Assembly: GCF_030028105.1 (NCBI RefSeq)
Contig: NC_092374.1
Span: 189,417,074 to 189,481,073 of the forward strand
DNA: 64,000 nucleotides
Reading direction: 5' to 3'
DNA from: Mobula birostris
Lineage: Eukaryota
Part shown: positions 4,283-62,310 of the stretch, one piece after another
Layout: each line of letters opens with the position of its first letter
How positions within the stretch are numbered: the first letter of the stretch is position 1
Notes under the pieces: model-generated
Told to the model about the DNA's origin: nothing
Database searches by the model: none
Seen by the model: only the letters and a program-made list of their open reading frames with translations
Translations under genes and position numbers: made by a program

Positions 4283-4343
4283 ATGGCCAAGAGTGGTTCT
4301 GGTATCGTCACGATTATCTGTCCGTTGCTGAACGATTCGAGAG
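4283..4343 (+). CDS. Gene A exon 1, signal-peptide exon MAKSGSGIVTIICPLLNDSR
   Basis: gaagacATGGCC start context is shared with gene B exon 1; phase-1 donor G|GTGGGA; lies in a CpG-rich patch; 9 nt shorter than the gene B exon. Confidence 0.75.
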
Positions 4344-4912
4344 GTGGGATCACGCCTTAATCCGGTGGGGGAAGGTGCTGAAGGGGATAAACGCTGAGAC
4401 CGAGGCGGGGGTGAGGGGTGGCTACAAGGTGCTTCTGTTGCTCTGTCTTTGCCCGTGCGTTGAATTTCCATCTCGATCATTTTTTACGATGTCTTTTCCT
4501 GCCCAGTTCTCTTAAGCAAGCAAGTATCTTGTGGAGGCGAGTTTCTTTATTTATTTACCTGAACCACGTTTGCCGTTGCATATCGGGGGCCGGGGTGCGG
4601 AGGAGACTTTCCGTACGGACCTTCGGTGCCTGACTGAGGGAAATGATTTGCTTCTCAGGCCACCGCGATCACGCGGTGGCGCTCGGAGTAGAGCGTGCAG
4701 CCATTTAATAATCTAAACGTGCAGAATAAATAAATAACTAAATAAACCAGGGGTTGCGTTATAGCGTAGGAGCAAAATCACTCGGTCTATATATACGGAG
4801 CTGCAAACTGCGTCTCTGCAATATGCTTAATTTCAAAGTAAGTCATTTTTTGTAAAACATGTCATGGAGAACATTAAGTTAGTGTGAACAGATTATCATT
4901 TCGACCTTAGAT

Positions 4913-7900
4913 CCATAGAACAACACTACGCCTACAGGCCCTTTGGCCCAAAATGTCGTGCCGAACTTTTAGACCATAACACCATAAGACGTAGGAGGAG
5001 TATCAGGCCATTTGGCCCATCGAATCTGCTCCATCATTCAATCATGGCTGATTCTATTTCCCCAACTCTCCAGCCTCCTCGTCGTAACCTTTGATGCCGT
5101 GCCCAATCAAGAATCTATCAAGCTCTGCCTTAAATACACCCAACGACCTGACCTCCAAAGGTGTCTTTGGTAATAAATTTCATAAATTCACCACCTCTGA
5201 CTGAAGAAATTTTATACACATCTCTGTTTTAAATGGACAGACCTCTCTTAAAACTGTGCTCTCTTGGCCTAGATTCCCCCAGCATGGGAAACATCCTTTC
5301 CACGTCTACTCTGTCAAGCGAGTACAGGCCCAGAGCCATCAAACGTTCCTCATATGATAACCCTTTCATTCCTGAAATCATACTTGTGAACCTCCTCTGA
5401 ACCCTCTCCAATGCCAGCATATCTTTTCTTAGATGAGGAGACTAAAACTGGTGAGGCCTCACTGGTGCCTTATAAAGCCTCAGCATCACATTCTTGTTTT
5501 TGTATTCTAGACTTCTTGAAATGAATGCTAATATTGCACTTGCCTTCCTCACCACCAACTCTACCTGCAAGCTAACCTTTAGGGTGTTCTGCAGAAGGAC
5601 TTCCAAGGTACTCTGCATCTCAGATCTTTGGATTTTCTCCCCATTTAGAAAATAGTCTGCGCATTTACTTCGACTACCAAAGGGCATGAGCATTCATTTT
5701 CCAACATTGTATTTCATTTGCCACTCACTTGCTCATTCTCCTCATCAGTGCAATTCTGCATTAGCTTACCTGTTTCTGAAACTCTACCTGCCCCTCCACC
5801 AATCTTCATATCATCTGTAAACTTGGCAATGAAGTCATTTATTCCAGCATCTAAATCATTGATATGCAGCATGAAAAGAAGTGGTCACAACAGCGATCCC
5901 CTTGAAACACCATTGTTCACTGGTAGCCAACCAGACAAGGATCCTTATATTCCCACTCACCATCTCCTACCAATTAGCCAATGCTCTAAATATGCCAGTA
6001 ACTTTCCCGTAATGCAAATGGCAGTTAACTTGGTAAGCAGCCTTATGTGCGACACCTTGTCAAAGGCCGTCAGAAAGTCCAAATATATAACATCCTCTGC
6101 ATTCCTATTATCTATTCTATGTGTAATCTCCACAAAGAACTCCAACAGGTTTGTCAGGCAAGATTATCCCTGAAGGAAACCATGCTGATTTTGTCCTATC
6201 TTGTCCTGTGTCACCAAGTACTCCATAAGCTGATCCTTACCAATTGAATCCAACATCTTCCCAACCACTGGGGTCAGGCTACCTGGTCTATAATTTCCTT
6301 TCTGCTGCCTTCTTCAATTTTTTAAAGTGTGGATTGACACCTGCAGATTTTCCAGTCCTCCAGCACTATGCCAGAGTTCAATGACTTTTGAAAGATCATT
6401 AATAATGCCTCCACTATCTCTACCACTACCTCTTTTAGAACCCTAGGGTTTTCCCGAGTGACTTATGTACCCCTAGGTTTTTCAGCTTTTTGAGCACTTT
6501 TCCCCTTGTAATAGTTACTGTACTGACTTCTCTTCTCTCATACCCTTCAACATCTGGCACACTGCCACTGTCTTCCAAAGTGAAGATTGATGCAAAATGC
6601 TTATTTAGTTCATCCTCCATCTCATTGGCCCCTGTTATTATTTCTCTGGCCTCATTTTCTGGTGGTCCTCTATCCACTCTCATCTGTTTTATTCTTTAGA
6701 TACTTGAAAAAGCTTTTACTATCCATTTTGTACTGTTTGCTCACTTGATTTCATATTTCATTTTTCTCCCTCCTAATGATTTTTTTAGTTGCTCTCTGTT
6801 GGGTTTTAAACCTTTCCGTTCCTCTGTCTTCTCACAAATTTCTGCTTTGTTGTATGCCCTCTGTTTTGCTTTTACATTAGCTTTTACTTCCTTTGTCAGC
6901 CACTGCTGGACTATTTTCCCATTTGAGTATTGTTTGTTTTTGGAATACATCTATCCTGCACCTTCCTTATTTTGCCCAGAAACTCACACCATTGTGGATC
7001 TGCTGTCGTCCCTGCCAACAACTACTTCCAAGTTACTTTGGTCAACTCCACTCTCATATCGCTGTACTTTCCTTTACTCCACAGAAATACCGCAAGGTCA
7101 GAATTTGCTTTCTCCCTATCAACTTCCAAGTTGAACTCAGTCATATTGTGATCACTGCCTCCCCTAAGGGTTCTTTTACCTTAATTCCCCTAATCACTTC
7201 TGGTTCATTACATAGCACCCAATTCAGTACAGCTGATGCCCTAGTAGGTTTAATGACGAACTGCTCTATCTCATAGGCATTCAACAAACTCACTCTCTTG
7301 GGATCCATTTCCAACCTGATTTTCCCAATTGAGCTGCATGTTGAAATTTCCCATGACTATCATAATATTACTCTTTGACAGAAGAACATAACATAAGAAA
7401 TAGGAGCAGGAGTAGGCCACCTGGCCTATCAAGCCTGCTCCACCATTCAATAAGACCTGGCTGATCCGGCCGTGGACTCATCTCCACTGACCTGCCTTTT
7501 CCCCATAACCCTTAATTCACCTTCTAGGCTAAAATCTATCCACGCTTGCCTTAACTATATTTACTGAGGTAGCCTCCACTGCTTCATTGGCCAGAGGATT
7601 CCACAGATTCAGCACTCTCTAGGAAAAGCAGTTCCTCCTCATCTCTGTCCTAAATATACTCCCCAAATTCTTGAGGCTATATCCCCTAGTTCTAGTCTTA
7701 CCTACCAATGGAATCAACTTTCTTGCCTCCATCCTGTCTATCCTTTTCATAATTTTATATGTTTCTTTAAGACCTCCTCTCATTCTTCTGAATTCCAGTG
7801 AGTACAGTCCCAGGTGACACAATCTCTCCACATAGTCTAACCCCCTCATCTCTGGAATCAACCTGGTGAACATCGTCTGCACTACCACCAAAGCCAGTAT

Positions 7901-8810
7901 ATCCTTCCTCAAATAAGGAGACCAGAACCGCATGCGGTACTCCAGGTGCAGCTTCACCAGTACCCTGTACAGTTGCAGCATAACCTCCCTGTTCTTAAGT
8001 TCAAACCCTCTAGCAATGATGGCTAACATTTCATTCGCCTTCCTGGTAGCTACTGCACCTGCAAACCAGCTTTGTGTGATTCATGCAAATTGCCCTTTTT
8101 GACACGCCTCTTCTATTTCCTGTTGTCCACATTCCAGCTGCTGTTGGGAGGCTTGTCATCAGGGGCCCTTTACCCTTGCAGTTTCTTTATTCAACTGACA
8201 AGGACGCAATGTTTTCCAATCCCATGTCACATCTTTCTACTGATTTGATGCCATTCTTTACCAGCAGAGCCAAGCCACCCTCTCTGACGACCTTCTTATC
8301 CCTCTGGTACAATGAGTAACCTTGGAGATACAGCTCCCAACTACAACCATCCTTCAGCCACAATTCAATGATGGGCACAACATCATACCCTACAATCCAT
8401 AAAAGTGCAACAAGGTCATCCACCTTATTTCTTATACTTCATGTATTGAGATATAACATTTTGAGTATTGTATTTGCTACCCTTTTTGAATCTGCAAAAG
8501 CCAAAAAAAAGCAGGCTGCAGTTATATTTTATCATCTGCCTGCCCTTCCTGATAGTCTGACTAAATGCTATCTTTGCTTTTTTACCATCTGTCTTATCCT
8601 GAGTCCCATCACTCTGATTCCCACCCTGACCCTCCCTAACTGCTCTGACAAACCAGCCCATGAGAATATTGGTTCGCCTCAGATTCAGGTGCAACCTAAC
8701 ACTTTTGAACCGGTCATAGCTCCCCCAGAAGAGATCGCAATGACCCAAAAAAACTGAAGCCCTGTCACCTGCACCAGCTCTCACCCATACATTAATTTGC
8801 CAAATCATCC
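4913..8810 (-). mobile_element. Composite of degenerate CR1 LINE ORF2 fragments (RT and APE endonuclease) in gene A intron 1
   Basis: Motifs LDFLTAFDKV, LERVQRRFT, HLEY...FWSPYLRKD and IELWLKDG..WEL, with frameshifts and stops. Confidence 0.9.
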
Positions 8811-8829
8811 TGTTGCTACCCTCATTGGC

Positions 8830-9210
8830 GCTGGAGTTTAGAAGACAAAGGAGATCTCATTGAAATTATTGAAAGGCTTAGATAGAGCGAACATGAAGAG
8901 GATGCTTCCTACAATGGGACAGTCTAGGATCATGGGGCACAGCTTCAGAGTGGAAGGACATCCCTTGGGAACAGAGATGAGTAGGGATTTTCTTTAGCCA
9001 GTGGGTGGTTAACCTGTGGAATTCATTGCTACAAACGGTTGTGGAGGCCAAATCACTGTGTAGATTTAAAGCAGAGGTTGAGATGTTCTTGTTTAGTAAG
9101 GGTATCAAAGGTTATCGGGAGAGGGCAGGAGAATGGGGTTGAAAGGGGTAATAAATCAGCCATGATGGAATGGCGGAGCAGACTCTATGGGCTGAACTGC
9201 CCAGTTCTGG
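8830..9210 (+). mobile_element. CR1 3' fragment
   Basis: agagtggaaggacatccctt...gggtggttaacctgtggaattc...gggctgaactgcc, matching the 3' ends of other CR1 copies in the window. Confidence 0.75.
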
Positions 9211-9997
9211 TGAATATTCACAAGACTCCTCGGAATATTCACATACTTTTGGGTCAAAATATTTTGCCTGGTTGGTAAACACTTGAGTACAGAAACCTAA
9301 GACTCTCAAAGTTAGTGTTGTGTGGTTGACTCTAGGTACACAAATCCCAATTATTGATTGCATCACAGAACATGTCTAATGCCTGTTTTGATGTAGGCCA
9401 ATTTACACGAGACTGATGCTTGTAATTTGGCAGTTTCACATGGGAATGAATCATGGTTGTCAGTATTAATGGCAATGCTTCTGTATCATAAACTTCATAC
9501 TTGGTTAGCAGCTGCCTTGCCCTAACAGACCCCACTGTTGACACCCTGAACAGAAACCTGTCCCAAGAAGTTTGAACTGGTTTCAGGTTACTTGGACTGC
9601 AAAGTCCCTTTACTATGGATCACTGTGTATACACAGCCTTGCATGAAGCATGACTTTCCTATGAGAAATCCACTTTCCTGCTTCAATTGTCTTCCTCCTC
9701 GGTCATTAGATATGATGTGTGCCTTTAACATTCAAGTAGTTTGCATCGTTATGTGGCATTTGACAGGAAACTGACACAATGGATCAGAGAATGGTGAAGG
9801 ATTGGTACAGGGTTGGTACAGGAAAATGGCACCGAGGTAAAAATAAAAAGCACCCCCTCTACGTGTGGTGTTGTTCCGACGTGTCTCCTTCTCCTTGTCC
9901 CAGAGCTGTGAAGACGCCATATAATGAAACTATGGACACCAACACATTGAAATTAATGACTCTAATGACATGTCCTTCTGTTTTATTTCTGGCAGAG

Positions 9998-10306
9998 CTG
10001 ATGGGAATCCAGCTACTCATCGTGTGGTGAATGGGGCACTGGGACAGTCAGTCACTTTGCCAGGAACTGTGCCAGAAGAAAACATTTCAGTCATTACTTG
10101 GGACTACATAAATACATCTAATCAAAAAAAGATTCAATTATGTGAGAAATATCAAAACAATCCAATAAAGTGTTACACAGAGAGGATTACGTTAAACCCG
10201 AAGGACTATAGCCTGGAAATACAGAACCTAGCAGACAGTGACGAAAGTTTCTATGCAAGGGCAGGTGTGGATGTCCATGAAGAAGTGACAAAACTGCAAA
10301 TTCATG
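9998..10306 (+). CDS. Gene A exon 2, IgV-like N-terminal domain (DGNPATHRVVNGALGQSVTL...DESFY...KLQIHG)
   Basis: ORF 9970-10320 has V-set hallmarks (G-Q-S-V-T-L, W in strand C, YSLEIQNL, D-x-x-x-Y) and a phase-1 donor G|GTAATA at 10307. The 5' boundary is uncertain because the ancestral AG is mutated; the in-frame acceptor is GAG 9995-9997. Confidence 0.85.
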
Positions 10307-11342
10307 GTAATATAATTTAAATTATAATATAAATTCTGATCTAACTTCTTTTAAGCAGACAAAGATGAAAGGGGAGATGTTTGTGGTCTGAGCTGAAGCC
10401 TATGGGGGGACACAAGGCAGAGGGAATACTGAACCTCTGCACAGATGCAGCACTTGTTCATTATGGAACCAGTCAGAAGCACTGTCTGTTTAAATACTGA
10501 TGGCAGGAAAACGGATTGCTCCTTTTATGGAAGGAACCTTAAGACACCAGACCTGGTGTAGATGATCTCTTACAGCAGGGATTCTCAACCTTTCTTATGC
10601 TATGAACAAATTCCATGAAGAAGAGGTCCCTGGATGCCAGCATGAAAACCTGTTTCTAAAGATGAATGTCTAGCTGCCACGTTTATATTTATTCTTTTGT
10701 CCCAGAATCCAAAATGTTCACTGGTGGGGGCTGGGGGAGGAAGTATGCCAACAGCATTAACCTCTCATTCTGGTAAAAGAACCCAGGTAGAACATAGATT
10801 ACATGGGTAAGGAATGTTACTGGTATTCACAAAGCCATTTACGCAAGTTCTGTTTTGGTGTCCTTGCCTGAAACTTGGTTCACAGGAATTCTAGGCAAAT
10901 TCTGGCTGTCTGGTGCTTGGGATGGACAGAATTGAGTACACCTTTATTCTTTACAGCTTAGAAGAATGAGATGTAATCTCACTGAATTTAAGAAATAAAT
11001 CTAAGAGGTCTTACTGTTGTGGATACATAGGGCTATCTTCCCAGCGTAATAATGCTTGATTCAGAATAAAGTTTGGGTTACTCAGGATGGAAATAGAAAG
11101 CGTGAGGTTGATAAATATTTGGTATGTTCTTCTCTAGAAGACAGAGGAGCCTTAATTATTCAACATTAAAGTAGATAGATGTTTTGTATATTAGAAGAAT
11201 TTAGGATAGTGTAAAAGTGTGATTGATGAATGGCAGAGCAGGTTTTTCCTAGCTCTACATCATAAGAGCTCATGAGAGGCTCATGGCTATTACCTACTTG
11301 TTGTCAAACCATTTTCTTTATTTGTGTTTTTCTTATAAACAG

Positions 11343-11630
11343 AAAGCATGTCGAAACCCATAATAAATACCGTCCAATTCAACTCAGATGAGGTATGTAA
11401 CATAAGCTTGCATTGTTTACTGGAGCGTGGCACAGAGCCAGCTTACACTTGGTGGACAGGAGATATTGAGGTCACGGCTGATGGGTCACATGTGCTGACT
11501 GATGGAGGGAGAAGACTGGAATTGTCCTTAAGGCTGAATGATAACACAGTGTACAACTGCACAGTGAGGAACCCTGTCAGCGAGGCATCTTCAAGTATGG
11601 ATGTCGGAAGGCCCTGTCTAGTCACAGAAG
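11343..11630 (+). CDS. Gene A exon 3, SLAM/CD48-type IgC2 domain
   Basis: Acceptor tttttcttataaacAG at 11341-11342; ESMSKP...CNISLHC...YTW...YNCTVRNPVS...PCLVTE; phase-1 donor AAG|GTGGGT. Confidence 0.9.
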
Positions 11631-12764
11631 GTGGGTCCATTACCTTTTCAAACCCCGTAAATTTTTCTTAAAATTAACCACGATTTATTCCCTTTCTCTT
11701 CTAATCTCAATCCATTTACAATAGATCAGATCAGGTCTGAGATAGATCTATGATTTCTAGGAACATGCATTCTGAGTAGAAAACTCCAGACATAACTTTG
11801 TTGCCCTATTCATTCTGGTCCCTCTATGGGTCAGTCAGAGCTTGACTGCAATTGATGGGATTCACTCAAGTTCAACACCACTGATACCACTCTAAAACTG
11901 AGATTTATGTTTGAGCTCGTCTCTCCTTCACCTGCCTGTATGACTGCATGTCTTATTAAACAGACTGTCACAAATTCCCTGAGGTATAATTGAGACAATA
12001 AAGACTCTCAAAGGACGGTGGTGGTCAGAACACTAAATATTTTGTGTCACAGGGTTAGAGAGTGGCCAATACGCCGGCAATCCTTAACACAGTAAATGAC
12101 CTTCTTCCCTCCTATATTGCGCTCTATTTTTCATTTATCCACGCGTCTATCTAAGAATCTTATTTGTGTCTCTAATGTATGTACCTGTACCATCACCCCA
12201 GACTGTGCATTCCATGCACCAATGACTTTCTATGTAAAAAAACATATCTCTGATATCTGCTCTATAGTATCATCCAACCACAGTAAAATTATGCCCATTT
12301 CTGAATGGCTATCCACTCTTATTGTCTGGAAAAAGGTGTTGACTGCCCACCCTTATACACCTTAATATATCTCTGACATTTTTCCATTAGCAGATGTTTT
12401 CATGGCTATAAGTCATAGATGCAAGGCAAAAGGCACAAGCAATAGAAGGGAACTTTTTTTATGAAATGGTTATGGGCTAGTTAAAACAGAGTCAATTCTA
12501 CTCTGATGTCTTATGATCTTATGATCTTATGGACTTCCTGCTTTCAAACTAGTGGCTTTATTTTTCTCTGGGCTTGATCCTGGGTTGAAATAAAACACTT
12601 TTAATTAACCTACAGTCACTTTCTGATGCTTAAACCTTCAGATTCAGCACTTTAGTTTTGATTGCCTTGAACTTGGCAGAAAAGTATTATGTGAATTACT
12701 AATAATGGGAAAAATGTTAAATTTAGATCTATTTAGAAATGTAGAAATCTGGTCCAAATGAGTT

Positions 12765-12950: not shown

Positions 12951-12989
12951 GGTATTGAGCTGTCCCATAAACTCAGTCAATGAGGACAA

Positions 12990-14983: not shown

Positions 14984-15100
14984 GTCAGAAGCCACTGAGG
15001 CCAATCCACATTCGTTTAATTGCAACTATTGCTCTGATAGCTTTCATCACAGTTATCCTCTTCATGATCTATTGGAAGAGAGCACCAAAGTCCAATGAAG
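14984..15100 (+). CDS. Gene A exon 4, transmembrane exon (QKPLRPIHIR-LIATIALIAFITVILFMIYW-KRAPKSNE)
   Basis: 20-residue uncharged hydrophobic run at 15016-15075 followed by a KR stop-transfer motif; phase-1 donor AAG|GCAAGT. The 5' boundary is uncertain because no intact phase-1 AG is present. Confidence 0.7.
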
Positions 15101-16801
15101 GCAAGTACTCTTGAATATTAAGTCACACAGTGTAGTCCCTGGTAATATCCCATCACAATATTTGGTCTCAAGTTAGTCTTTGTTAATGGGACCTCTGGAT
15201 CTTGTCCGTTCAGGTATGGTCTCACTGGACTAGTGACTGCCTCCTGGCAATAATTAGTGGAGTGAGACTATACAACCTCCTGGGCAGGAATTCAAAGCAC
15301 TTCCTTGAACTGAGGGGAAAACAGCCCACAAGTGTGCATCATGAAATTTAGTGACTATAAAATACGATGCTTTGTAAAGTGATTCTTGTTCCAACCCCTT
15401 TTGTAGTGTGCCACAGAGTATCTCAGGTGCTCAACACACACAACCTTTGGGATATTCCTTCACTTAAGAATGGTAAGCACCGTTTCTCAGCCTATGACTG
15501 CAGAAAGAAGTTTTTGCAATGCCTGGTGGTTCTTCTATTGAACAAATTAAAGGATACTATTCGACATATATATTCAACAAAATGAGTCCCATTTCAGGTA
15601 TTGGCACCCTGGCCATTCTTCACACCTTGACCTACACAACCCTTATTCCCATGGTTCCAACCCACAAAACTGGGCACGCCCTCTGCCTTTGCTTGACTGG
15701 CAATACCAACCTGATCAGACAAGCTCTGCCCCAGCTACAAATCTCAAACATTTCTTCACCACCAACAGAATGGAACTCAGATTCCTCTTTGTAGTCCAGC
15801 ACATAAAGGAATGGTCTTCCCTTGCATGTTCTCCAATGCTTGGAATATGGATTTCCTTTCTGTTCATCAACCAGCGGTGTGCCTCTTATAGGGTCTAAGA
15901 ATATGCAAGGTCAAAGTTTGAACTACATTTAGGAGCTCAGTTCACAAGAGTAATATCTGAGTTGCCAGGAGCCAAGGTAACTCCTAGTGAAGAGAGATGC
16001 ATTGCAGAACAGGAATACCTGTTGCTCTGAAGAGCCATGTAATGGACTCTGCTCTTAAAAGTTTATGTGATGTTCTTGTATCTGTATTCAACTTAGAGTA
16101 GGTCACAGATAATGTAATCTCTTAGCTGTGCTGCACGTGCTTCATTATGAATTGCAAATATTTCTTGAATGTTGTGCACAGATGGAGGAGATTGAAGCAA
16201 CACAGAGATTACAGCACAAAATCATTATTGTGAGGAAATTAAAGAAAAAAAATATTCTGGGAATCTTTCAATTGAGATTAAAGGTGATTAAAATATTTAT
16301 GAATTGGACAGTCTGAAGAACAAGTGAGACAGCCTGAAAGGAAGGAATGGTTTATTTGGAAAAGTGAAATTTCAGACACTGAGTCAAGCAATGTTAATGG
16401 CAGTAACTTGCTTGGATTTCTGTTTCCATCCCACCCTGCCTGCCCTCCACACTATCTATAATTCTGCTACTTCACCATATTTGAATGTGTCACTGTATGT
16501 CAACTTCCAGGGTGTCAAAGGAAAGGATAAAGGAGGACAGGAACAGCGAAGCCTTGGGAACATTGTCTGTAGGATAAACCAATCCAACTTCTGGTCTTTT
16601 CCCTTGTGGTATTTTAAGCAGAACTGTACAAATCCAAAGTTCTGCACATTGTCTCTTCAATCATTTTTTTCCAGTTTGAGAAACTCTTTCATATTTCCTC
16701 TCAATCTCCGATTTCTTACAAAACTGGTGACATGAGCAGAATATGACATGTAGAATTGAACAATTCTATTCTGCTCTCCATCTTTGTTGCTGCCTACACA
16801 G

Positions 16802-20844: not shown

Positions 20845-20850
20845 AATAAA
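20845..20850 (+). terminator. Candidate polyadenylation signal of gene A
   Basis: AATAAA about 285 nt after the predicted stop codon. Confidence 0.35.
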
Positions 20851-49640: not shown

Positions 49641-50967
49641 CTTACAGTCCTTCAGGTTTTCCACATCTCTCCTCCTTATCACCCCGTCATCTTGTTTCAT
49701 CAGCCCGTTATCTAAACACAGATTGTCTCATATTTAGTTTCCTTGCTTCACCTTTCCTACTCACTGCTTGCCCAGTTCCACATTCCCACCATCGGCGAGC
49801 TACTCATCAACAAATACTCCAAGGGCAGCCTGACTAGTGTCTTACAGAGGCTCAGCATTACCTCCCTGCTTTTATATCCTGTTCCCCTTGAAATAAATGC
49901 TAACACCGCATTTGTCTTCAGCCCCCACAGTAACCTCCTTCAATCCATTTGGGCAAGTTCTCTCTCATACCTTTGTAATTCTCTTTATTCATTTGTGATT
50001 ATGATACATGTGAGTTATGCTTCAACATCTCAAATTGCAGTATGAATTCAATCACATGGTGATCACTGCATGCTGGGTGCCTTTACGTTAAGCTCCCTAA
50101 TAAGATTGGGGTTATTACCAAAAAACCCAGTCTAGTATATCCTTTCCGCAAGTAGTCTCAAGCACAAGCTGCTCTAAAAAGCCATCTTGTAGGCAGTCAA
50201 CAAATTCTCTCTCTTGCGATCTGACAACAACCTGATTTTCCCAATCCCTTTGCATGTTGATGTCCCCATTACAATTGTGTCATTTCCCTTATTACATGCC
50301 TTCCCAGCTCCCTGTGCAATCTCAACCCCACATTTTGGCTACCATTTAGGGTGGAACACTGAGCAGGAGCATGTTATGGGATAAAGCAATAACCAATGAA
50401 AACTAATTTAGTAACCAGGATAGGCAGGGGCATAGTAAGCAGACGGAAATAAATAGACACATAAATTCAATTTATTTCAATGCACGAGGCTTCATAGATA
50501 AAGGGGAGAACCTCAAAGAATGATTGGCTCTGAGGACTGGGATTTTACAATAATAATTGAAAAATTGAATTAAGGACAGGATAGAGGCAAAGCAGATGTA
50601 TGGGTGAATGAAAAGGGGAAGTTACCTTTTTGTTTCTTGAGTCACTATTCAGAGGGCCCTCCTCGGGCTGATACAACAGTGTGGTCCTCTTCTAAGGAAA
50701 AGGAGCAGGATAAGATGTTGCAGTGGAAATCAGGGGATTTTGACTCAAGTGCCAAAATTGTATTACTTTTAAGATAGCGATGTGAAAAGATAGGAAGGTC
50801 CACAGTTTAAGTTGCTAAACTGGAGCAGGCCTAATTTTAAGGGAATTAGACAGGATCTAACAAAGAAGGATCTGCTGAACCTAATTGAATGGAAAGGAAT
50901 AAATTGCAAGGTGGAGGCCTTTAAGATTATGATATTAAGAGTCCAGGAGGAATATGTTCCTGTTCAG

Positions 50968-53930
50968 ATAGAACATAGAAACATAGAAAACCTACAGCAC
51001 AATACAGGCCATTCCGCCCAAAAAAGCTGTGCCGAACATGTCTTTACCTTAGAAGTTAACCAGCGTTACACATAGCCCTCTATTTTTCTAAGCTCCATGT
51101 ACCTATCCAGGAGCCTCTTAAAAGACCCCATTGTTTCCACCTCCACCACCTTCACCAGCAGCTCATTCCACGCATTCACCACTCTCTGTGTAAAAAACTT
51201 GCCACTAACATCTCCTCAGCACCTACTTCCAAGCACCTCAAAACTGTGCCTTTTCGTGCTAGCCATTTCAGCCTTGTTAAAAGGCCTCTGACTATCCACA
51301 CGATCAATGCCTGTCATCATCTTATACACCTCTATCAGGTCAGCTCTCATCCTCTGTCGCTCCAAAGAGAAATGGTCGATTTCACTTAACCTATTCTCAT
51401 AAAGCATGCCCCCCAATCCAGGCAACATCCAGGCATATAGATGAGGGTAGTGCAGTGGATGTGATCTATATGGATTTTAGTAAGGCATTTGACAAGGTTC
51501 CACATGGTAGGCTTATTCAGAAAGTTAGAAGGCATGGGATCCAGGGAAGTTTGGCCAGGTGGATTCAGAATTGGCTTGCCTGCAGAAGGCAGAGCGTGGT
51601 GGTGGAGGGAGTACATTCAGATTGGAGGATTGTGACTAGTGGTGTCCCACAAGGATCTGTTCTGGGACCTCTACTTTTCGTGATTTTTATTAACGACCTG
51701 GATGTGGGGGTAGAAGGGTGGGTTGGCAAGTTTGCAGATGACACAAAGGTTGGTGGTGTTGTAGATAGTGTAGAGGATTGTCAAAGATTGCATAAAGACA
51801 TTGATAGGATGCAGAAGTGGGCTGAGAAGTGGCAGATGGAGTTCAACCCGGAGAAGTGTGAGGTGGTACACCTTGGAAGGACAAACTCCAAGGCAGAGTA
51901 CAAAGTAAATGGCAGGATACTTGGTAGTGTGGAGGAGCAGAGGGATCTCGGGGTACATGTCCACAGATCCCTGAAAGTTGCCTCACAGGTGGATAGGGTA
52001 GTTAAGAAAGCTTATGGGGTGTTAGCTTTCATAAGACGAGGGATAGAGTTTAAGAGTCGCAATGTAATGATGCAGCTCTATAAAACTCTGGTTAGGCCAC
52101 ACTTGGAGTATTGTGTCCAGTTCTGGTCACCTCACTATAGGAAGGATGTGGAAGCATTAGAAAGGGTACAGAGGAGATTTACCAGGATGCTGCCTGGTTT
52201 AGAAAGTATGCATTATGATCAGAGATTAAGGGAGCTAGGGCTTTACTCTTTGGAGAGAAGGAGGATGAGAGGAGACATGATAGAGGTGTACAAGATAATA
52301 AGAGGAATAGATAGAGTGGATAGCCAGCGCCTCTTCCCCAGGGCACCACTGCTCAATACAAGAGGACATGGCTTTAAGGTAAGGGGTGGGAAGTTCAAGG
52401 GGGATATTAGAGGAAGGTTTTTTACTCAGAGAATGGTTGGTGCGTGGAATGCACTGCCTGAGTCAGTGGTGGAGGCAGATACACTAGTGAAGTTTAAGAG
52501 ACTACTAGACAGGTATATGGAGGAATCTAAGGTGAGGGCTTATATGGGAGGCAGGGCTTGAGGGTCGGCACAACATTGTGGGCCGAAGGGCCTGTACTGT
52601 GCTGTACTATTCTATGTCTATGTCTATGTCTATGTCTAAATATCTCCTACACCATTTCTATGGTTTCCACATCCTTCCTGTAGTGAGGTGACCAGAACAG
52701 AGCATAGTACTCCAAGTGGTGTCTGACCAGGGTCCTATATAGCTCCAACATTACCTCTCGGCTCTTGAACTCAATCCCATGATTGATGAAGGCCAGTACA
52801 CCATATGCCTTCTTAACCACAGAGTCAACCTGTGCAGCAGCTTTGGGTGTCCTATGGACTTGGACCCCAAGATCCCTCTGACCCTCCACACTGCCAAGAG
52901 TCTTACTGTTAATACTATATTCTGCCTTCATATTTGACCTACAAAACTAAACTACCTCACACTTATCTGGGTTGAACTCCATCTGCCACTTCTCAGCCCA
53001 GTTTTGCACCCTGTCAATGTCCCACTGTAACCTCTGACAGCCCTCCACATTATCCACAACACCCCCAACATTTGTGTCATCATCAGATTTACTAACCGGG
53101 TTGCAGTGCTGTTTCCTTATTCAAGAAAGGGAGTAGAGGTAGAGTACCTCAGCTATCTCCTCCAGTTGCATACACACTTTCCGCTGTCACACCTGATTGA
53201 CCCTATACTCTCACGTCTTATTCTCTTGCTCTTCACATACTTGTAGAATGCCTTGAGGTTTTCCTTAATCCTGTCCACCAAGGCCTTCTCATGGCCCCTT
53301 CTGGCTCTCCTAATTTAATTCTTAAACTCTTTCTTGTGAGGCTTATAATCTTCTAGATATCTATCATTACCTAGTTTTTTGTACCTTTCGTAAGCTCTTC
53401 TTTTCTTCTTGACTAGATTTACAACAGCCTTTGTACACCATGGTTCCTGCAGCCTATCATCCTTTCCCTGTCTCATTGGAATGTACCAGTGCAGAACTCC
53501 ACACAAATATCCCCTGAGCATTTGCCACATTTCTGCAGTACCTTTCCCTGAGAACATCTGTTTCCAATTTATACTTCCAAGTTCCTACCCGCTAGCCTCA
53601 TATTTCCCCTCTCTCCAATTAAACACTTTCCTAATTTGTCTGTTCCTTTCCCTCTCCAATGCTATGGTAGAGGAGATAGAATTGTGATCACTATCTCCAA
53701 AATGCTCTCCCACTGAGAGATCTGACACCTCACCAGGTTTGTTTCCCAATACCAGATAAAGTACAGCTTCTCCTCTTGTAGGCTTATCTACATATTGTGT
53801 CACAAAACCTTTCTGAACACACCTAACAAACTCCACCCCATCTAAACCCTTTGCTCTAGGGAGATGCCAATCAATAGTTGGGAAATTAAAATCTCCCACC
53901 ACGCCAACCCTGTTATTATTACAACCTTGT
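50968..53930 (-). mobile_element. Older CR1 (minus strand), split by a younger plus-strand CR1 at 51435-52637
   Basis: CR1 3' end at 50968-51430 resumes at 52638; endonuclease relic VGDFNFP at ~53890. Confidence 0.88.
51435..52637 (+). mobile_element. Young 5'-truncated CR1 with an uninterrupted 368-aa RT-to-C-terminus frame (51455-52561)
   Basis: MDFSKAFDKV, PQGSVLGP, FADD, all without stops; (tctatg)n tail. Confidence 0.95.
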
Positions 53931-54699
53931 TATTATTAAGATGAGCAGCAAGACTGGTAAATACAGGGATATATGGGTGGTGAGCTAGTGAGTCTCTCGT
54001 CTAACAAAAGAAGGAAGAATGCATTAGGTTTAGAAGCCAGTTCCGAGGCCCAGGCTTGCAAATCTGTTCCATGATTGCATGCCAGAAATTACACTCACCA
54101 TATTATTTTCCTGTTACTGTCAGATCCTCTGCATTTGCGGGTCTTATATCAGACCCTTACATTTTCTGAATATATTCCTGGGTGACTGGACTCGGTATTT
54201 TGAGATAAGAGACTGCAGATGCTGGAATCTGTAGAAGCAGACAAAACGCTTGAGTATTCAACGTGTAAAGCAGCAGATAAATGGACATAAATGGACATAA
54301 TGGATAAATGGACAAATGAAGGGTCTGGACACGGACAAGAAACGTCGACAGTACATTTCCCTCCAGAGCTGTTGCCGGAGCTGTTAAGCAGTTTCTCACA
54401 GAGTCAGCGTTTTGTCACAATCATAGAAAACGACAGCGTGGAAACAGGCCGTTCGATCCATCTAGTCTGCGATGAACTGTTATTCTGCCTAGTCCCATCG
54501 ATCCACAAATGGACCATAGATCTCAGTACCCCTTTCATCCATGTACTCATCCAATCTTCTCTTAGATATTGCAATCGAACCCCCATCCACCCACTCTGCT
54601 GCTGTTTTATACCTAGTTTGTTCTTCACTTTGTCCCTATTTGCTGAATATACTGTAGCTGTGTTCCGTCCCTTAACTAAAGGTGCTGTAGCCAGTCGTA

Positions 54700-54900
54700 A
54701 CCTGTCCGCAGCTTCAGAGCGTGGCGGAACTACTGTCTCACAGCTCCGGGAACCCGGGTTGGATCCAACCTCCGGTGCTGTCTGTGTGGAGTCTGGACGT
54801 TGTACCGGTGATCGCTCAGGTTTCCCCGGATGCCCCGATTTCCTACCACCTCCTAGAGACGGTAGGTTAATTAGTCGTGAGAAGCTAATCGGAGCGTTTT
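54700..54900 (+). mobile_element. tRNA-derived CORE/HE1-like SINE
   Basis: gggttggatcc B-box-like motif followed by tccggtgctgtctgtgtggag. Confidence 0.7.
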
Positions 54901-55179
54901 GATGAATGGCAGAGTGTGAAGCAATTGATGGCGATACGAAGAGAATTAAAAATGGGCTCATGTAGCATTGGTGAAAATGGGCAGATAAAGATCGGCGTGG
55001 ATTCTGTTGTCTGTTCGGGCGCTGTCTGTTTGAATGAAATGGATAAAAAGTGAATGGAAAGTTGAGGAAAATTAAGTTGTAGGAGTACGGGTACAAGGGG
55101 CGAATATCGATGGGACCGCTCAGCTAACAGCTGACGTCGAGCCCGATTAACAACTGAACGTTCGCACTTCACTCTCGAA

Positions 55180-55318
55180 TCTCCCTTTCAAACTGTTCTC
55201 TTTCCCCACCCCTTTCTCTGCTCATGCCCCTGAGCGATATGAGCAAATCGAGCGTAACGGAACCACATTTGCGTGAAGAGTACCACATTTAGATGACCAT
55301 CTTCGCTTCACAGAAGAC
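55180..55318 (+). promoter_or_regulatory. Putative proximal promoter/5'UTR of gene B with two RUNX-type ACCACA sites
   Basis: CpG-rich; AACCACA at 55261 and TACCACA at 55281; homologous to 4180-4282. Confidence 0.4.
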
Positions 55319-55388
55319 ATGGCCAGGACAGCTTCTGGGATCCTCTCCGGCGTCATGATTATTTACCTGCTGTTGAGCGATTCGGGAG
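55319..55388 (+). CDS. Gene B exon 1, signal peptide MARTASGILSGVMIIYLLLSDSG (continues VLA-ETD in exon 2)
   Basis: ATG at 55319 in gacATGG context; hydrophobic core; phase-1 donor G|GTTGGT. Confidence 0.82.
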
Positions 55389-55516
55389 GTTGGTTCTCGC
55401 TTAAACTGGTGGGGGAAGGTGGTGGAAGGGTTAAACATTGAAACCGAGGTACGAGTTGTTGCTTCGTTGTTCTGGCTTTTTTGAATGTTTTGAATTTCCA
55501 ATCTCGATAATCTTGT

Positions 55517-55925
55517 CATAGAGACATAGAAAACCTACAACACAATACAGGCCCTTCGGCCCAGAGTGCTCTGCTGAACATGTACTTACTTTAAAAATTA
55601 TCTAGTGTTACCCACAGCCCTCTATTTTTTAAAGATCAATGTACCTGTCCAGGAATCTCTTAAAAGGCCCTATTGTATCCGCCTCCACCAGCGTCGCCGG
55701 CAGCACATTCCACGCACTCACCACTCTGCGTAAAAACAAACTTACCTCTGACATCTCCTCTGTACCTACTTTCAAGAAACCTAAAACTGTACCCTCTCGT
55801 GTTAGCCATTTCAGCCCTGGGAAAAAGCCTCTGACTATCCACACGATCAATGCCTCTCATCATCTTATACACCACTATTAGGTCACCTCTCATCCTCCGT
55901 CGCTCCAAGGAGAAAAGGCCGAGGG
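55517..55925 (-). mobile_element. CR1 3' fragment in gene B intron 1
   Basis: ERRRMRGDLI...RGIDRVDSQRLFP. Confidence 0.85.
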
Positions 55926-57075
55926 TGTCGCAATAATTTTCAGCCCAGTTCTTTCAAGCCAGCCAGTATCTTATGGAGCAATGAAGGACATGTTCTCCTT
56001 TTTCAAAGAAAGGAACTTCCCATCCTTGACCATCAACTCTGCCTTCAGCCGCGTGTCTTCCACATCATGCACGTATGCCCTCACCCCATCCTCCCGCCGG
56101 CTTACCACGGATAGGGTTCCTCTTGTCCTTGCCTACCACCAGCCTTGGCATCCAGCACATAATTCTCCGTAACTTCTGCCATCTCCAAAGGGATCCCAGC
56201 AGCAAGCATATTTTACCCTCCTGCCCCCCCCCCCTCACTTTCTACTTTCCGCAGGGATGGCTCCCTATGCGACTCCCTTGTCCATTCAGCCCTCCCCGCT
56301 GATCTCCTCCTGGCTCTTATCCTTGCAAGCGGAACGAGTGCTACACCTGCCTCTACGCCTCCTCCCTCACTACCATTCAGGGCCCCAAACAGTCCTTCCA
56401 GGTGAGGCGACATTTCACCTGTGCATCTGTTGGGGGTCATATACCGTGTCCAGTGCTCCCAGTGTGGCCTCCTGTATATCGGTGAGACCCGATGTAGATT
56501 GGGAGGCCGTTTCACTGAGTACCTAAGCTCTGTCCGCCAGAAGAAGTGAGATCTCCCAGTAGCCATCCATTTTAATTCCACTTCCCATTCCATTAAGTCA
56601 ATCCATGACCTCCTCTACTGTCGCAATGAGACCACACTCAGGTTGGAGGAACAACACCTTGTATTCCGTCTGGGTAGCCTCCAACCTGATGGCATGAACA
56701 TCAGTTTATCGAACTTCTGGTAATGCCCACCCTCCGCCTTCACCATTCCCCATCCCCTTTTTTCTCTCTCATCTCCTTGCCAGACGATCATCTCCCTCTG
56801 GTGCTATTCACTGTTTTTCTTTCTTCCATGGCCTCTCCTATTACATTCCCCCTTCTCCAGCCCTGTATCTCTTTCATTAATCAATTTCCTAGCTCTTTAT
56901 TTCAAACCCCCTCCCTCAGCCCGATTTCACTTATCACCTTGTGTTTCTCCCTCCCTTTCCCCTCACCCTTTAAATTTCTTTTCCCTCCGGTCCTGATGAA
57001 GGGTCTTAGCCCGAAACTACACTACGTTCCGTAGATGCTCCCTGATTTACTGAGTTCCTCCAGCATTTTGTTTGT
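55925..57075 (+). mobile_element. Penelope-like element 3' part with GIY-YIG endonuclease
   Basis: GVIYRVQCSQCGLLYIGETRCRLGGRF at ~56430-56510; LEEQHLVFRLGSLQPDGMNI; broken hammerhead at 56988-57017. Confidence 0.88.
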
Positions 57076-57514
57076 GATATTGTGGAGGTGATATTGTTTG
57101 TTCTTTTATGCACGTTTGCTGCTGCAGATCGGGGCGTTGAGGGGGTGGGGGAGGAGTGTTTCTGTACAGACACTCAGTGCCTGACTGAGACAAAATGTCT
57201 GCCTCTCACGCTGTCGCGAGCACACAGTGTTGCTCGGAATAAAGTGTGAAACCGATTAACGATCAAAAGGTGTAGAAAATAAATCCGAGGTTGTGTTACG
57301 ATGTAGGAGCATAAATTACCAGGTTTATATTTGGTCTGGAAATTGTGGAAATACCTGTATAGAACGGCATTGCAAACTGTGTGATTAGAATGTACTTAAT
57401 TTCAAAATAGTTCATTTTCGTAAAATGTAATGGCAAACATTGAAGTTAGTGTTAAATAAATGATTAGGAGATTATCAGCTCAGCAACAGCTTTTTCCATA
57501 CTCCCATCATATCA

Positions 57515-59000
57515 GAAACATAGAACAGCACCGCACAGTACAGGCCTTTCGGCCCACTATGTCATGCTGAACCTTTATACTCCAGCATCAATATAATGCT
57601 TCCCTCCCGCATAGCCCTCCATATTTCATTCATTTATGTATCTATCAAAGATTCTTTTAAATATCTCTAATGAATCTGCCTTTACCACTACCCTTGGCAG
57701 CCCATTCCAGTCATTCACCACTCTCTGTGCAAAAGATCAACCTCTGACAACAGGTTAACCCTATCTCTACCCTCCCCATACTTTCTTCCAATCGTGTTAA
57801 AATTATGCCATTTAATATTAGCCATTTCCGTCCCATGAAAAGTGTTCTGCCCGACTACTTTATCAGTGTGTCTTGTCATCATACACACCTCTTATCAAGT
57901 CATCTCTCACTCTTCTTCACTTCAAAGAGAAAAGCTCTAGCTTACTAAATCTTTCCTCTTAAAAATGCCCTCTACTCCAGGCAGTCTCATTTGCACATTT
58001 CCATATCCTTCCTATAAGGAGACCTGAAGAGAAGACAATACTCCAAGTGTGGTCTAAGCAGATTGAGTTACATAACGGCTCTTTAACTCAGTTCCCTGAC
58101 TCATGAAAATCAACATACCATATGCCATTTTAAACACACTATCGACTTATGCAGAATCTTTGAGGGATATATCAACATGGACCCCGAGGTTTCTTTGTTC
58201 CTCCTCACTAAAAGGATCCTGCCATTAACTTTGTACTTTGCCTTCCAGTTCGACCTTCCAAAGTGTTTCACTTCACACTTACCGAGACTGAACTCTATCT
58301 GTCATTTCTCAGCCAATTTTCTGCATCCTATCTTTGTTCCATTTAGAACTCTTCTCAGCCCAATTCTCTACATCATACCAATGTCCAATTTCAACCTATG
58401 ACAACCTTTTATGCTATGCACAACACCACTAAACTTTGGGTCATCTGCAAACGTACTAACCACCTTATCATTCCCTCATCCAAGTCATTTATAAAATTCA
58501 CAATAGGTAGTTTCCCAGAAGAGATCACGATGGAATAGTACTGGTCATTGAATTGTAGGTAGGCTCTACTCTATCTACTACCACCGTCTGCCTTCTGTGG
58601 GCAAGCCAATACTGACTCCACACAGCCAAGGTCCCCTGGATTCCATGTCTTCTGACTTTCTGGATGAGGATTATCAAATTTCTCACTGAAATCCATGTAC
58701 ACCACATCTACTACTGTACATTCATCACAATGTTTTGTCAGTTCCTTGAAGAATTCCGTCAACCTTGTAAGACACTGCCTGCCCTTTATAAAGTTATGCA
58801 GACTAATTATAATCAATCTATCTTCACTAAATTTGAATAAATTCTGTCTCCAATAGTTTGTCCACCACTAACATAAGACTCACTGGTCTATAATTTCCAT
58901 GAAATTGCTTTTCGTAAACAGAGGAATAACATTTAACATCCTCCAGTATGCACCTCTATTCTTGACAGACCTGTAAAACCCTAATACAGTCTCAACTTGC
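57515..59000 (-). mobile_element. Degenerate CR1 RT fragment
   Basis: VVYMDFSEKFD and CLTRLTEFF; catagaacagc tail. Confidence 0.8.
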
Positions 59001-59299
59001 TCTAATGTCATTATGTTATTTTTGTTTATTTGACCCTTTGTCAGTTTGCCTTCCATTCTCCTTTCATCCTCTGTCACGGATTTGCAGAGCAAATGTGGGC
59101 ATTCTTATCAGAATTTGGGTTAGCTACGCAACCCCTGGGCATCAACCAATAGCAGAGTTGCAGGGGTAGGATGGTTGAATTGTGGGAAGCTGAACTTACT
59201 CAAATGGTACACACCCACTCATGGAAAGAGTAAAAAAGGAATAAAAAAGACAAACTGACATTTAACTGAGTAATAAATTATGCACTTCAATGAAAAATA

Positions 59300-59500
59300 A
59301 ACCGCCTAGTGTTGTCGAGGCATCAGCGCCAGACTTTGCGGCAAATGGTCCCTAGTTCGAATCCAGCATGCTCCTTGCGTGCTTTCCATCCATGCTGTGT
59401 GGAGCGTTTAGCTAGCGACTTGGCCTCATAAACAACAGTCAAATGCCGTGGAAATGGCAAAAATAAATGCTGCACAAGGCATGAGAAAAGAACAGCCATG
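59300..59500 (+). mobile_element. tRNA-derived SINE of a second family
   Basis: B box GTTCGAATCC at 59355-59364 followed by ctagcgacttggcctc. Confidence 0.55.
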
Positions 59501-59789
59501 AAAAACAGAGCAAATTAAAACAATAACAACATGACTACAGTACTACAGAAACATATATTATTTCTTAATAGATTTCAATGGAAACTGTGTAAACTGCTGT
59601 GTTCTTTTGGTTCACTGAAAATGAACAAAATCAGTGCCAACACCTAGTGTAGATAGGGTAGATAGACTGCCTTCATACAATCATTTCGATGATTGCATCT
59701 GAACAAATCTTCATTTTCATTGTAACATTGAAGATGATTGCCAATACCTTCAAACTCTTCATAATTCCTAACTTGTTAAAGTACTGAAT

Positions 59790-60093
59790 CATTTTATTTC
59801 CACTCCTGGCCTTTTCTGGCATTTCTCACCCTGGAAATTGCTGTGCATGAATAAACCAAATCAACATTTTCTGAGATACTGAAACCTCCCCACTTGGCAT
59901 CAACAATCATTCCATTGTCAAATTCACTGAGATCACATCTCTTTCTCATTCTGATGTTTGATCTGAACAACTGAACCCATTGACCATGTCTGCATGCATG
60001 TATGATTTGAGTTGCTGCCATACGATTGGCTGATTAGATGTTTGCATTAATGAGGTGTTGCACAGGGGTAGTTAATGAGGTGACCTTTGAGTG
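59790..60093 (-). mobile_element. Tc1-like transposon 5' fragment
   Basis: MRKRCDLSEFDNGMIVDAKWGGFSIS; degenerate TIR ending gagtg followed by TA; same family as 34443-34979. Confidence 0.75.
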
Positions 60094-60755
60094 TATCTAT
60101 TGTAGTTTACAGGATCTGATCCTTCTCCCACCGCTTCTCTTCTCCATCCTGTACTTTGTTGCCAAGGTCACCATTACTGCTCAATCCAAACTGCCCTTGA
60201 CAAGTGCTGGTAAGCTGCCTTCTGGAACAGTTTCAGTCCTCCTGGGGAAGGTGCTCGCTCAGTGGTGTTGGGGAGGGAGTTCCATGATCTAGAGCCAACA
60301 ATGATAAATGTTGAGCCAACGCAATGAAACTGTGGCAAAAAATATATAAACTGCTGGAGGAACTCAGCGGGTCAAGCAGTCTCAGTGAGGGAAACTAGTG
60401 ATGCAGGGTTTCTATCAAAAACATTAATCATTCCCCCTCCTGCCATAGAAGCTGTTTGAAATGCTGATCTCCTCCAGCAGATTATTTCCTGTTCTATGTA
60501 TCACAGCCTTGCGTGGAGCATAGCTGTTCTATCAGAAATCAACTTTTGTGTTTTAATTGCTTTCTTCCATGGTTATTAGATAACATGCGTGCCACTGAGG
60601 TAAAAGAGCATCCCCTCATTATGTGGTGGTGCTCTCATGTGGCTGCTTCCCCTTCTCCCTCAGATTTGGGACCATGCTAGAGTTGCCATGCTGTGGAAAT
60701 GTGGACACCAACACACTGGGACTAATTACTCTAATGGTTTGTCCTTCTGTTTCAG

Positions 60756-61082
60756 TTCTGGCAGAGACTGATGGGAATCTGGCTACTCGTCGTGTGGTGA
60801 ATGGGACACTGGGACAGTCAGTCACTTTGCCAGGAAATATGCCAGGAGAAAACATTTCAGTCACTTGGGACTATACAAATTCATCTCATCAAAAAAAGGT
60901 TCAATTATGTATGAAATATAAAAACAATCCAACAGATTGTAACAGAAAGAGGATCACATTAAACCCGAAGGACTATAGCCTGGAAATACAGAACCTAACA
61001 GGCAGTGATGAAGGTCTGTATGAAATAAATGCAAGGACCGATACAGATATTCATCATGAAGTGATGGAACTGCGAATTTATG
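60756..61082 (+). CDS. Gene B exon 2, IgV-like domain
   Basis: Acceptor tccttctgtttcAG at 60754-60755; VLAETDGN...GQSVTL...TWDY...YSLEIQNL..DEGLYEI...LRIYG; donor G|GTAATA. Confidence 0.92.
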
Positions 61083-62019
61083 GTAATATTATTTTAATTA
61101 AAAGATGTGCTGCTATATAACATTTTTAAGCAGAAAGAAGCAAGCGGAAATGTTTATGGCCTGAATCAAAGTCTGTGGGATACACAAGGCAGAGGGAATG
61201 CTGAAAGACTGTTCAGATGCAGCACTTGTTTTCATTAAGGACCCGTTCCAAAGCACTGTCTGTTTATTGTATGACTTAGTATGATCTCTTAATGTGAATT
61301 CTTGCTGCCACCTGTGTACTCATCCTTCTGTCCTAAAAGCCACATTGCTCAATAGTGAGTTGGTACGTCGGCAGCATTAATATCTTCCCCTTACTATTTG
61401 GAAGGAGAATTGTACGGAGCAGAACAGAAGTGAAAGTGAAGGACAGGAGACAAAGGTGCTGGTCTACTGAGCTTCATTTCAGAGAATCCAGATGGAACAT
61501 AGAGAACATGGGGAAGGAATGTTCCTAGTACTCTCAAAGCTGTTGATACAAGATCCATTTGTGTCTCCTTATCTAAAACGTGACATTCATGGGAGTCCTA
61601 ACTAAATGTCAGCAGTACGGTTCCTGGGATAGAGGGAAATCCCATACAAAAGACAGAGTGGAGTACACCTGTATTACTTAGAGCTTAAAAAAATGAGAGG
61701 TAAACTCACTGAAACTTAAGAACTAGATCTTCAAGGTCTTAAGACAGTGGATGCTTGGGCCCAGCCTTAGAAGGCTAGAATCAGCATAATGGGTAGGTCT
61801 ACTCTGGAAGACTGGGGAGCCCTAACTATTAAGGTGTATTAATACTAAAGTAGATAGATGTTTTGTATATTAAAGGAATTAGGATAGTGTAAAAATGAGA
61901 TTGATGAATGGCAGAGGAGATTTCTCCTGGTCCTATTTCCAAAGTTCTTGCGAGAGGCTCATGGCTAATACCTATTTGTTGATAACCATTATCTTTATTT
62001 GTGTTTTTCTTATAAACAG

Positions 62020-62310
62020 AATCTGTATCAACACCAGTAATAAAGAGCAGCAAGTTCAACTCAGATGAGGTATGTAACATTAGTTTGCGCTGTTCACTGG
62101 AGCGTGGCACGGAGCCAGTTTACACTTGGTGGACAGGAGGTGATGAGGTCACGGCCGATGAGTCACATGTACTGACTGACAGAGGGAGAAAACTGGAATT
62201 GTCCGTAAGGCTGAGTGAGAACAACGCAGTGTACAACTGCGCAGTGAGAAACCCTGTCAGTGAGGCAGCTACGAGTGTGAATCTCAGAAGGCTCTGTCTG
62301 ATCACTGAAG
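62020..62310 (+). CDS. Gene B exon 3, IgC2 domain
   Basis: Acceptor tttttcttataaacAG; ESVSTP...CNISLRC...YTW...YNCAVRNPVS...LCLITE; donor AAG|GTTGGT. Confidence 0.92.

Follow-up and report, generated by a model that had tools for sequence, protein, structure and literature searches.

Guselnikov et al. are said to have described, in 2011, expanded CD2/SLAM families in non-mammals such as Xenopus, with lineage-specific tandem expansion, varied tails, and pseudogenes. For cartilaginous fish, we found no dedicated paper on SLAM receptors or on a SLAM cluster in the literature searched. Among the features of the SLAM family is a V-type immunoglobulin domain (IgV) that lacks the disulfide between strands B and F (PMC4718992). 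Of the neighboring two-domain proteins, CD48 and a form of CD58 are anchored by glycosylphosphatidylinositol, and CD2 has a long, proline-rich tail (in part PMC4718992). Here, we describe two genes of this kind, gene A and gene B, in a 64-kb stretch of contig NC_092374.1 from Mobula birostris (order Myliobatiformes). We refer to this whole stretch of 64,000 nucleotides (nt) as the window, and all positions are counted from its first letter. The reading that we favor, with a probability of roughly 80%, is that the two genes belong to a stingray-specific tandem cluster of the SLAM family in which gene B is an intact receptor, while gene A most likely represents an unprocessed pseudogene that became inactive only recently.

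Both genes lie on the + strand, and each comprises a leader exon, an IgV exon, and a C2-type immunoglobulin (IgC2) exon, with every junction among them in phase 1. This is the arrangement proposed in an earlier interpretation made from the letters of the window, hereafter the sequence-only reading; the exons were found where it had placed them, and its end coordinate of 62310 is exact. The leader ATGs are at 4283 (gene A) and 55319 (gene B), a spacing of 51 kb, and a six-frame profile scan of the window revealed V and C2 exons of these two genes only. Gene B has the following exons.

55319 to 55388, + strand: gene B leader exon (MARTASGILSGVMIIYLLLSDSG, then a G/gt donor; phase 1), an exact match to the start of XP_072115633.1
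60756 to 61082, + strand: gene B IgV exon (acceptor tttcag/TT; 3' end TATG/gtaata), Pfam V-set E = 7e-11, SLAMF6 E = 6.4e-6, an exact match to P0135
62020 to 62310, + strand: gene B IgC2 exon (four Cys; phase 1), Pfam Ig_3/I-set, an exact match to XP_072115633.1

Once spliced, these exons encode 230 amino acids that are identical, from residue 1 onward, to the beginning of NCBI XP_072115633.1 (P0135), a “SLAM family member 5-like” protein of Mobula birostris. This exact match confirms the exon borders of gene B and supports the cartilaginous fish origin that had been proposed for the DNA. It also shows that NCBI had annotated gene B beforehand, so that the gene is no novelty, although the entry is an automatic prediction, never yet studied. 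After the C2 domain, XP_072115633.1 continues into a transmembrane (TM) segment (…LHIRLITTIALKAFITAIVFAFYW) and then a tail (KRELKFNK / ASDTERRSKSVLYAVTSKTNIAMDQ / PQRHLHQLDANEGHQNPRARLTTIYDEIKYNPDV…) with two tyrosine motifs, the proximal SVLYAVT and the distal TTIYDEI. The latter fits the switch motif TxYxx(V/I), which is absent from SLAMF2, 8, and 9. The exons for the TM segment and tail of gene B lie past base 64000, outside the window, and no TM-like exon of this gene was found in 62311-64000. Gene B would accordingly encode an intact type I receptor, composed of a signal peptide, an IgV domain in which the B-F disulfide is absent, a two-disulfide IgC2 domain, a TM helix, and a tail bearing these tyrosine motifs. 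If mammalian SLAM receptors are a guide, its V domain would contact a binding partner carried by a second leukocyte, and its TIYDEI motif, when phosphorylated, would recruit SAP/EAT-2 or phosphatases with Src homology 2 (SH2) domains.

To place the two genes in a family, profile and fold rankings stand in for a tree with human SLAMF1-9, CD2, CD48, CD58, and CEACAM. Pfam assigns both V exons to V-set and both C2 exons to Ig_3/I-set, with the 2B4 receptor family below threshold. The B and F strand positions of both V domains, aligned to the same positions of SLAMF6, contain no Cys (SVTLPG in strand B; GLYEI or SFYA in strand F), which agrees with the family feature cited above; each V domain has two Cys in the C'-C'' region. 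Both C2 exons carry Cys at 18, 24, 72/73, and 91/92, all four of which are aligned with Cys of SLAMF6 in a profile match; the SLAM-family pattern is one of two disulfides in this domain, with one of the four Cys immediately ahead of the stalk. In phmmer searches against solved structures, SLAMF6 was the top match of both V exons (E = 8e-4 for gene A and 6.4e-6 for gene B), followed by CD84 and CD58 for gene A and by 2B4, CD58, and CD84 for gene B. The fold test used as proxy the orthologue from Pristis (72% identity to gene B), whose model has a predicted local distance difference test (pLDDT) score of ~90 in the ectodomain. A fold search of the PDB with this model returned NTB-A/SLAMF6 and CD2 first (template modeling score of 0.78 by target for CD2), and comparison with Swiss-Prot models returned SLAM, 2B4, SLAMF6, CD84, SLAMF7, SLAMF8, CD2, Ly-9, and SLAMF9. 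Neighbors in the protein atlas fell exclusively in the SLAM, 2B4, CD48, CD2, and Ly-9 clusters. As for a TM segment after C2, the one of gene B is seen in XP_072115633.1, outside the window, whereas gene A has a TM exon at 14984-15100 that is preceded by AA and is out of phase with the nearest AG. The switch motif takes the form TIYDEI or TVYNEI in orthologues from Pristis, sharks, and Narcine, being conserved in Pristis, Scyliorhinus, Heptranchias, and Narcine. Word-based protein searches retrieved elasmobranch relatives plus one teleost CEACAM5-like protein and nothing else. With no B-F Cys in V, four SLAMF6-aligned Cys in C2, and SLAM or CD2 members on top in sequence, profile, and fold searches, the assignment to CD2/SLAM made by the sequence-only reading is upheld.

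That genes A and B belong instead to CEACAM or to another family of the immunoglobulin superfamily is extremely improbable. Such a placement could draw on the C2 exon, which taken alone is less telling and matches FCRL5, CEA, and DCC best (CEA at E = 7.5e-9), on the highest summed profile score, which goes to CEA with 82 bits over several repeats, and on the CEACAM N-domains, which likewise lack the B-F disulfide. Yet CEACAM, the family that the sequence-only reading had named as the competing placement, matches the C2 part only and never spans the V domain; the V exon of gene B hits CEACAM1 at E = 0.6-1.4 against 6e-6 for SLAMF6. The profile of elasmobranch orthologues likewise aligns with SLAMF6 in a single 72-bit stretch from the first V strand to the last C2 Cys, whereas its best single domain against CEA scores 47 bits and runs from the last V strands through C2 only. 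CEA lacks the first and last of the four C2 Cys, so that the extra pair aligned with SLAMF6 is missing from it; the tails of the orthologues bear TIYDEI, and the fold searches rank SLAM and CD2 members first.

The two genes sit in two copies of a duplicated block.

950 to 12356, + strand: copy A, collinear with 50352-63039 and interrupted by retroelement insertions
50352 to 63039, + strand: copy B, collinear with 950-12356 and interrupted by retroelement insertions

These collinear blocks on the same strand bear out the tandem arrangement. Nucleotide identity between copies is 71-84% in the flanks; between the genes themselves it is 76-82% in introns and 83-85% in exons. At the protein level, the V domains are identical at 71/106 positions (67%, E = 6e-51), close to the ~70% (72/103) counted earlier by eye, and the C2 domains at 67/96 (70%, E = 1e-49). 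According to our trees, gene A is sister to XP_059826812/3 of Hypanus sabinus (support of 96/89 in the V tree and 98/97 in the C2 tree), and in the C2 tree, gene B pairs with XP_062905756 (P0137) of M. hypostoma (100/98). The stingray paralogues form one clade apart from those of sawfish, skates, electric ray, and sharks (98/98). Given this single clade and the grouping of gene A with Hypanus, the duplication that gave rise to genes A and B is older than the manta-stingray split, yet took place within Myliobatiformes. In M. hypostoma, Hypanus, and Hemitrygon, 3-5 paralogues per species lie on one chromosome-scale contig, and those of M. hypostoma have consecutive accession numbers. NCBI-predicted relatives in rays, skates, sharks, and elephant shark are named variously SLAM-like, SLAMF5/6/7/9-like, Ly-9-like, or CD48-like. 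Both the varied names and the stingray clade agree with the proposal of a lineage-specific cluster without a one-to-one mammalian ortholog. Gene B and its congeneric relative P0137 are 91% identical in C2 and only 78% identical in V, and no M. hypostoma V domain comes closer to that of gene B than 83%. As judged from sequence comparison, the V domains of the cluster may either evolve very fast or be swapped among its members.

Gene A presents a different picture. Its recognizable exons are listed below.

4283 to 4343, + strand: gene A leader exon (MAKSGSGIVTIICPLLNDSR, then G/gt; phase 1), like the leader of the Hypanus orthologue P0157 (MAKSGSGVVSGVTVICLLLSDLG) minus 3 codons
9998 to 10306, + strand: gene A IgV exon (3' end ATG/gtaata), Pfam V-set E = 2.4e-8, top PDB matches SLAMF6, CD84, and CD58
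11343 to 11630, + strand: gene A IgC2 exon (four Cys; both ends in phase 1), Pfam Ig_3/I-set, 85% identical to the C2 of Hypanus P0153
14984 to 15100, + strand: gene A TM exon (GQKPLRPIHIRLIATIALIAFITVILFMIYWKRAPKSNE, then G), profile E = 4.6e-5, start set by homology
20815 to 20970, + strand: gene A last cytoplasmic exon, degenerate (PQRHLHQLD...AQLTMTYSPDV), in register with orthologues

Despite its open V and C2 domains, this older sister copy would no longer be spliceable into a canonical receptor. Gene B and all models use the V acceptor tttcag/TT, giving …SDSG-VLAETDG; gene A has ttttat at this place, so that the ancestral acceptor is lost, and one nucleotide has been deleted where its V exon begins (gagct vs gagact). 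The V domain can be read in frame only via a weak gAG acceptor at 9996-9997. A stronger cAG at 9994-9995, when joined to the phase-1 leader, produces a frameshift and a stop after 11 codons. The V exon reported for gene A by the sequence-only reading is thus present, but its canonical acceptor is not. Farther downstream, the TM exon has the length and register of those in Mobula hypostoma P0006 (TEG-EKLLGPFHICLI) and Pristis P0116, reading TEG-QKPLRPIHI… against TEG-EKLLGPFHI… and SEG-NSPRRTLHI… in relatives. The dinucleotide before 14984 is AA, not AG, and the nearest AG is out of phase; the donor is GC (G/gcaagt), with a read-through stop at 15112-15114. The middle tail exon present in orthologues was not found in gene A by tblastn or by a profile scan. 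In the last exon, a 15-nt in-frame deletion removes the IYDEI core of the switch motif (AQLTMTY-SPDV vs AQLTTIYDEIKYNPDV), and a 1-nt deletion after PDV puts the ancestral C-terminus (EHLVAAANMEEEF...) in another frame. A TLYTEI at 20456 was considered as the switch motif of gene A and rejected; homology lends it no support, and the pattern TxYxx[VIL] is roughly as frequent as expected by chance. Two lost acceptors, the V frame problem, and the destroyed tail motif together mean that the window holds one working receptor gene and a probably dead or remodeled copy. Of the two receptor genes originally claimed, gene B stands and gene A probably does not.

The 60-80 nt directly 5' of each V exon resemble a signal peptide. 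In gene B, 60674-60755 reads MLELPCCGNVDTNTLGLITLMVCPSVSVLA/ETDG and shares the frame of V, whereas 9932-9995 of gene A reads MDTNTLKLMTLMTCPSVLFLAE and is 1 nt out of frame with V. The same peptide opens M. hypostoma XP_062905754 (P0142) and the skate transcript-derived protein P0004, which suggests that this stretch is a conserved alternative, unspliced leader.

Granted the family assignment, sequence comparison indicates that gene A was probably under constraint for most of its history and was inactivated recently in this lineage. The ratio of nonsynonymous to synonymous substitution rates (dN/dS) between the two genes is 0.54 in C2, which points to past constraint on the gene A ectodomain. 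All three exon indels that separate gene A from gene B are multiples of 3, and the terminal branches of gene A equal those of the Hypanus orthologue in both the V and the C2 tree; both observations speak against long-standing decay. We had also considered that gene A evolves faster than gene B, an idea dropped in view of these equal branch lengths. Database searches that return two other M. birostris paralogues yielded no protein derived from gene A. Several points weigh against an intact gene B beside an inactivated gene A. The missing protein model could reflect database limits. The V and C2 domains of gene A are open over 198 codons, and the gene could still give a product, either by use of the weak gAG acceptor or in soluble form. 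In V, dN/dS is ~1.07, a value compatible with decay or with diversifying selection. Three small RNA-labeled M. birostris runs, one of them flagged as probably DNA, cover repeats and none of the exon junctions of genes A and B, so the splicing of gene A is deduced from the genomic sequence alone. As for gene B, ligand binding, SAP recruitment, and leukocyte expression are all ascribed to it by analogy with mammalian SLAM receptors. All three runs contain a contig that is at least 98% identical to the gene B V exon over 60822-60954 and diverges at 60954 into unrelated sequence (AAGCTTCAGAATGAGTG…); it probably stems from a paralogue elsewhere in the genome.

Could gene A instead be functional in a changed form? 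It might serve as a dedicated secreted V-C2 protein, ended by read-through or polyadenylation after C2 and shared with the Hypanus orthologue, its TM and tail exons being relics. We consider this main alternative unlikely. Reading through the gene A C2 donor gives GSITFSNPVNFS, then a stop, and both Hypanus isoform models (P0153, P0157) end in a read-through peptide with a stop at the same place (GGSITFTNPTIFS vs GGSITFSNPVNFS in gene A). The V and C2 domains are open, every indel is in frame, and the branch length matches that of the orthologue; for such a product, the lesions in the TM acceptor and the tail would be irrelevant. The loss of the V acceptor and the 1-nt deletion would nevertheless hit any product, with a weak in-frame gAG beside a strong out-of-frame cAG, and in gene A, the alternative leader without splicing does not share the V frame either. 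An open stretch of 14 codons likewise begins the intron of gene B, which means that chance may account for the read-through frame. Moreover, neutral divergence is low, as the intron identities indicate, and relics therefore remain open for long. A little more doubtful still is the wider proposal that the gene A lineage, that is gene A plus Hypanus XP_059826812/3, is a conserved secreted SLAM-like gene, its soluble product serving to divert or modulate the membrane receptors encoded in the cluster. If so, manta gene A would still be expressed via the weak in-frame acceptor. In mammals, soluble SLAM is not known to arise other than by alternative splicing.

The sequence-only reading had also raised a receptor/ligand or paired-receptor set. 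That genes A and B form such a functional pair, whether receptor and ligand or activating and inhibitory, with gene A having shed its motif to signal via a membrane-edge Arg and a short tail, seems to us highly improbable. Gene A does lack the switch motif that gene B keeps, reading through its TM exon yields a short tail (KRAPKSNEGKYS, then a stop), and an Arg at the outer edge of its TM segment recurs in short-tailed skate forms (P0003, P0004). However, the same Arg is found in gene B and other motif-bearing paralogues (LHIRLITTI in P0135, P0137, P0145, and P0150), so it does not mark an activating partner, and we rejected it as such. The TM exon of gene A has AA in the acceptor position and so cannot be spliced in frame, its V domain has the frame problem described above, and most SLAM receptors bind themselves (PMC4718992), which also counts against an A/B pair. 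With gene A damaged and the Arg common to motif-bearing paralogues, nothing favors the set originally proposed. We retain the reading of one intact receptor gene, B, and one copy, A, that was probably inactivated recently.

The remainder of the window is repeat-rich vertebrate DNA without gaps, with fragments of reverse transcriptases from long interspersed nuclear elements (LINEs) on both strands. In the 30 kb separating the two genes (21000-50000), LINE-type retroelement fragments occur throughout, on both strands, and no other host gene was seen. Nor does the rest of the window contain a gene besides A and B that could be compared with the surroundings of the mammalian SLAM locus at 1q23. 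Examples of reverse-transcriptase open reading frames in the window are as follows.

27452 to 30031, - strand: reverse-transcriptase open reading frame
36597 to 37665, - strand: reverse-transcriptase open reading frame
42367 to 48525, - strand: reverse-transcriptase open reading frame
51455 to 52561, + strand: reverse-transcriptase open reading frame

Some gene models of relatives depart from the canonical layout. Among the NCBI isoform models of orthologues, each of the three frames of the last tail exon is used (P0008/P0116, P0013/P0118/P0120). Skipping the middle tail exon, whose length of ~76 nt is estimated from 25 residues and the phases, shifts the frame and turns the switch-motif tail into …RDIY(I/V)NWMP… or …TFTSTG…; this could be splicing noise or a regulated tail switch. 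M. hypostoma XP_062905755 (P0006) has the order leader-V-V-C2-TM, with a leader, TM segment, and tail like those of gene A and V and C2 domains that are not, and either represents a genuine gene with two V domains or results from the fusion of adjacent genes in the model. Two SLAM-like models of Hypanus sabinus, P0007 and P0150, continue past the C2 or TM exon with a long C-terminus resembling a transposase (…ERIGNLAGDFNSQLKAKVV…), where the model probably extends into a mobile element.

Rays thus have true SLAM-type receptors with a switch motif that, judging from mammals, would dock SAP-like adaptors, a result of little import beyond the automatic annotation. With its expansion in stingrays, its rapidly changing V domains, and one or more copies in decay, the cluster follows the usual birth-and-death pattern of immune receptors. 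In practical terms, gene A should be annotated as a probable pseudogene or TM-less form, and comparative immunology could treat the elasmobranch SLAM cluster as a family to be described.

Among known systems, CEACAM proteins resemble the ray genes in their C2 domains and in an N-domain without the disulfide; they differ in that the V domain is unmatched, the C2 domain lacks the extra Cys pair, and the tail is of another kind. CD2, CD48, and CD58 share the two-domain fold and the disulfide pattern, and CD2 is a top fold match, but they lack the switch motif, and their sequence matches are weaker than that of SLAMF6. The likeness is greater with the mammalian receptors SLAMF1/CD150, SLAMF6/NTB-A, CD84, 2B4, and SLAMF7, which have an IgV domain without the B-F disulfide, a four-Cys IgC2 domain, a TM segment, and a TxYxx(V/I) tail (PMC4718992). 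They also have one exon per domain, phase-1 introns, and tandem clustering, and they provide the best sequence and fold matches. Yet identity to the mammalian receptors is only ~20-24%, and no single member stands out as the orthologue. Unlike them, the ray V domains have an extra Cys pair (QLC…NNP..C), and the ray tail combines one proximal tyrosine resembling an immunoreceptor tyrosine-based inhibitory motif with a single distal switch motif. Closest to gene A are Hypanus sabinus XP_059826812.1 and XP_059826813.1 (SLAM family member 5-like X1 and X2), which are 77% identical to it in V and 85% in C2. These models, which are without a TM exon, have the MAKSGSG leader of gene A and, after C2, end by read-through as it does, but unlike gene A, they keep the normal V acceptor (…LG/VLAESDG).

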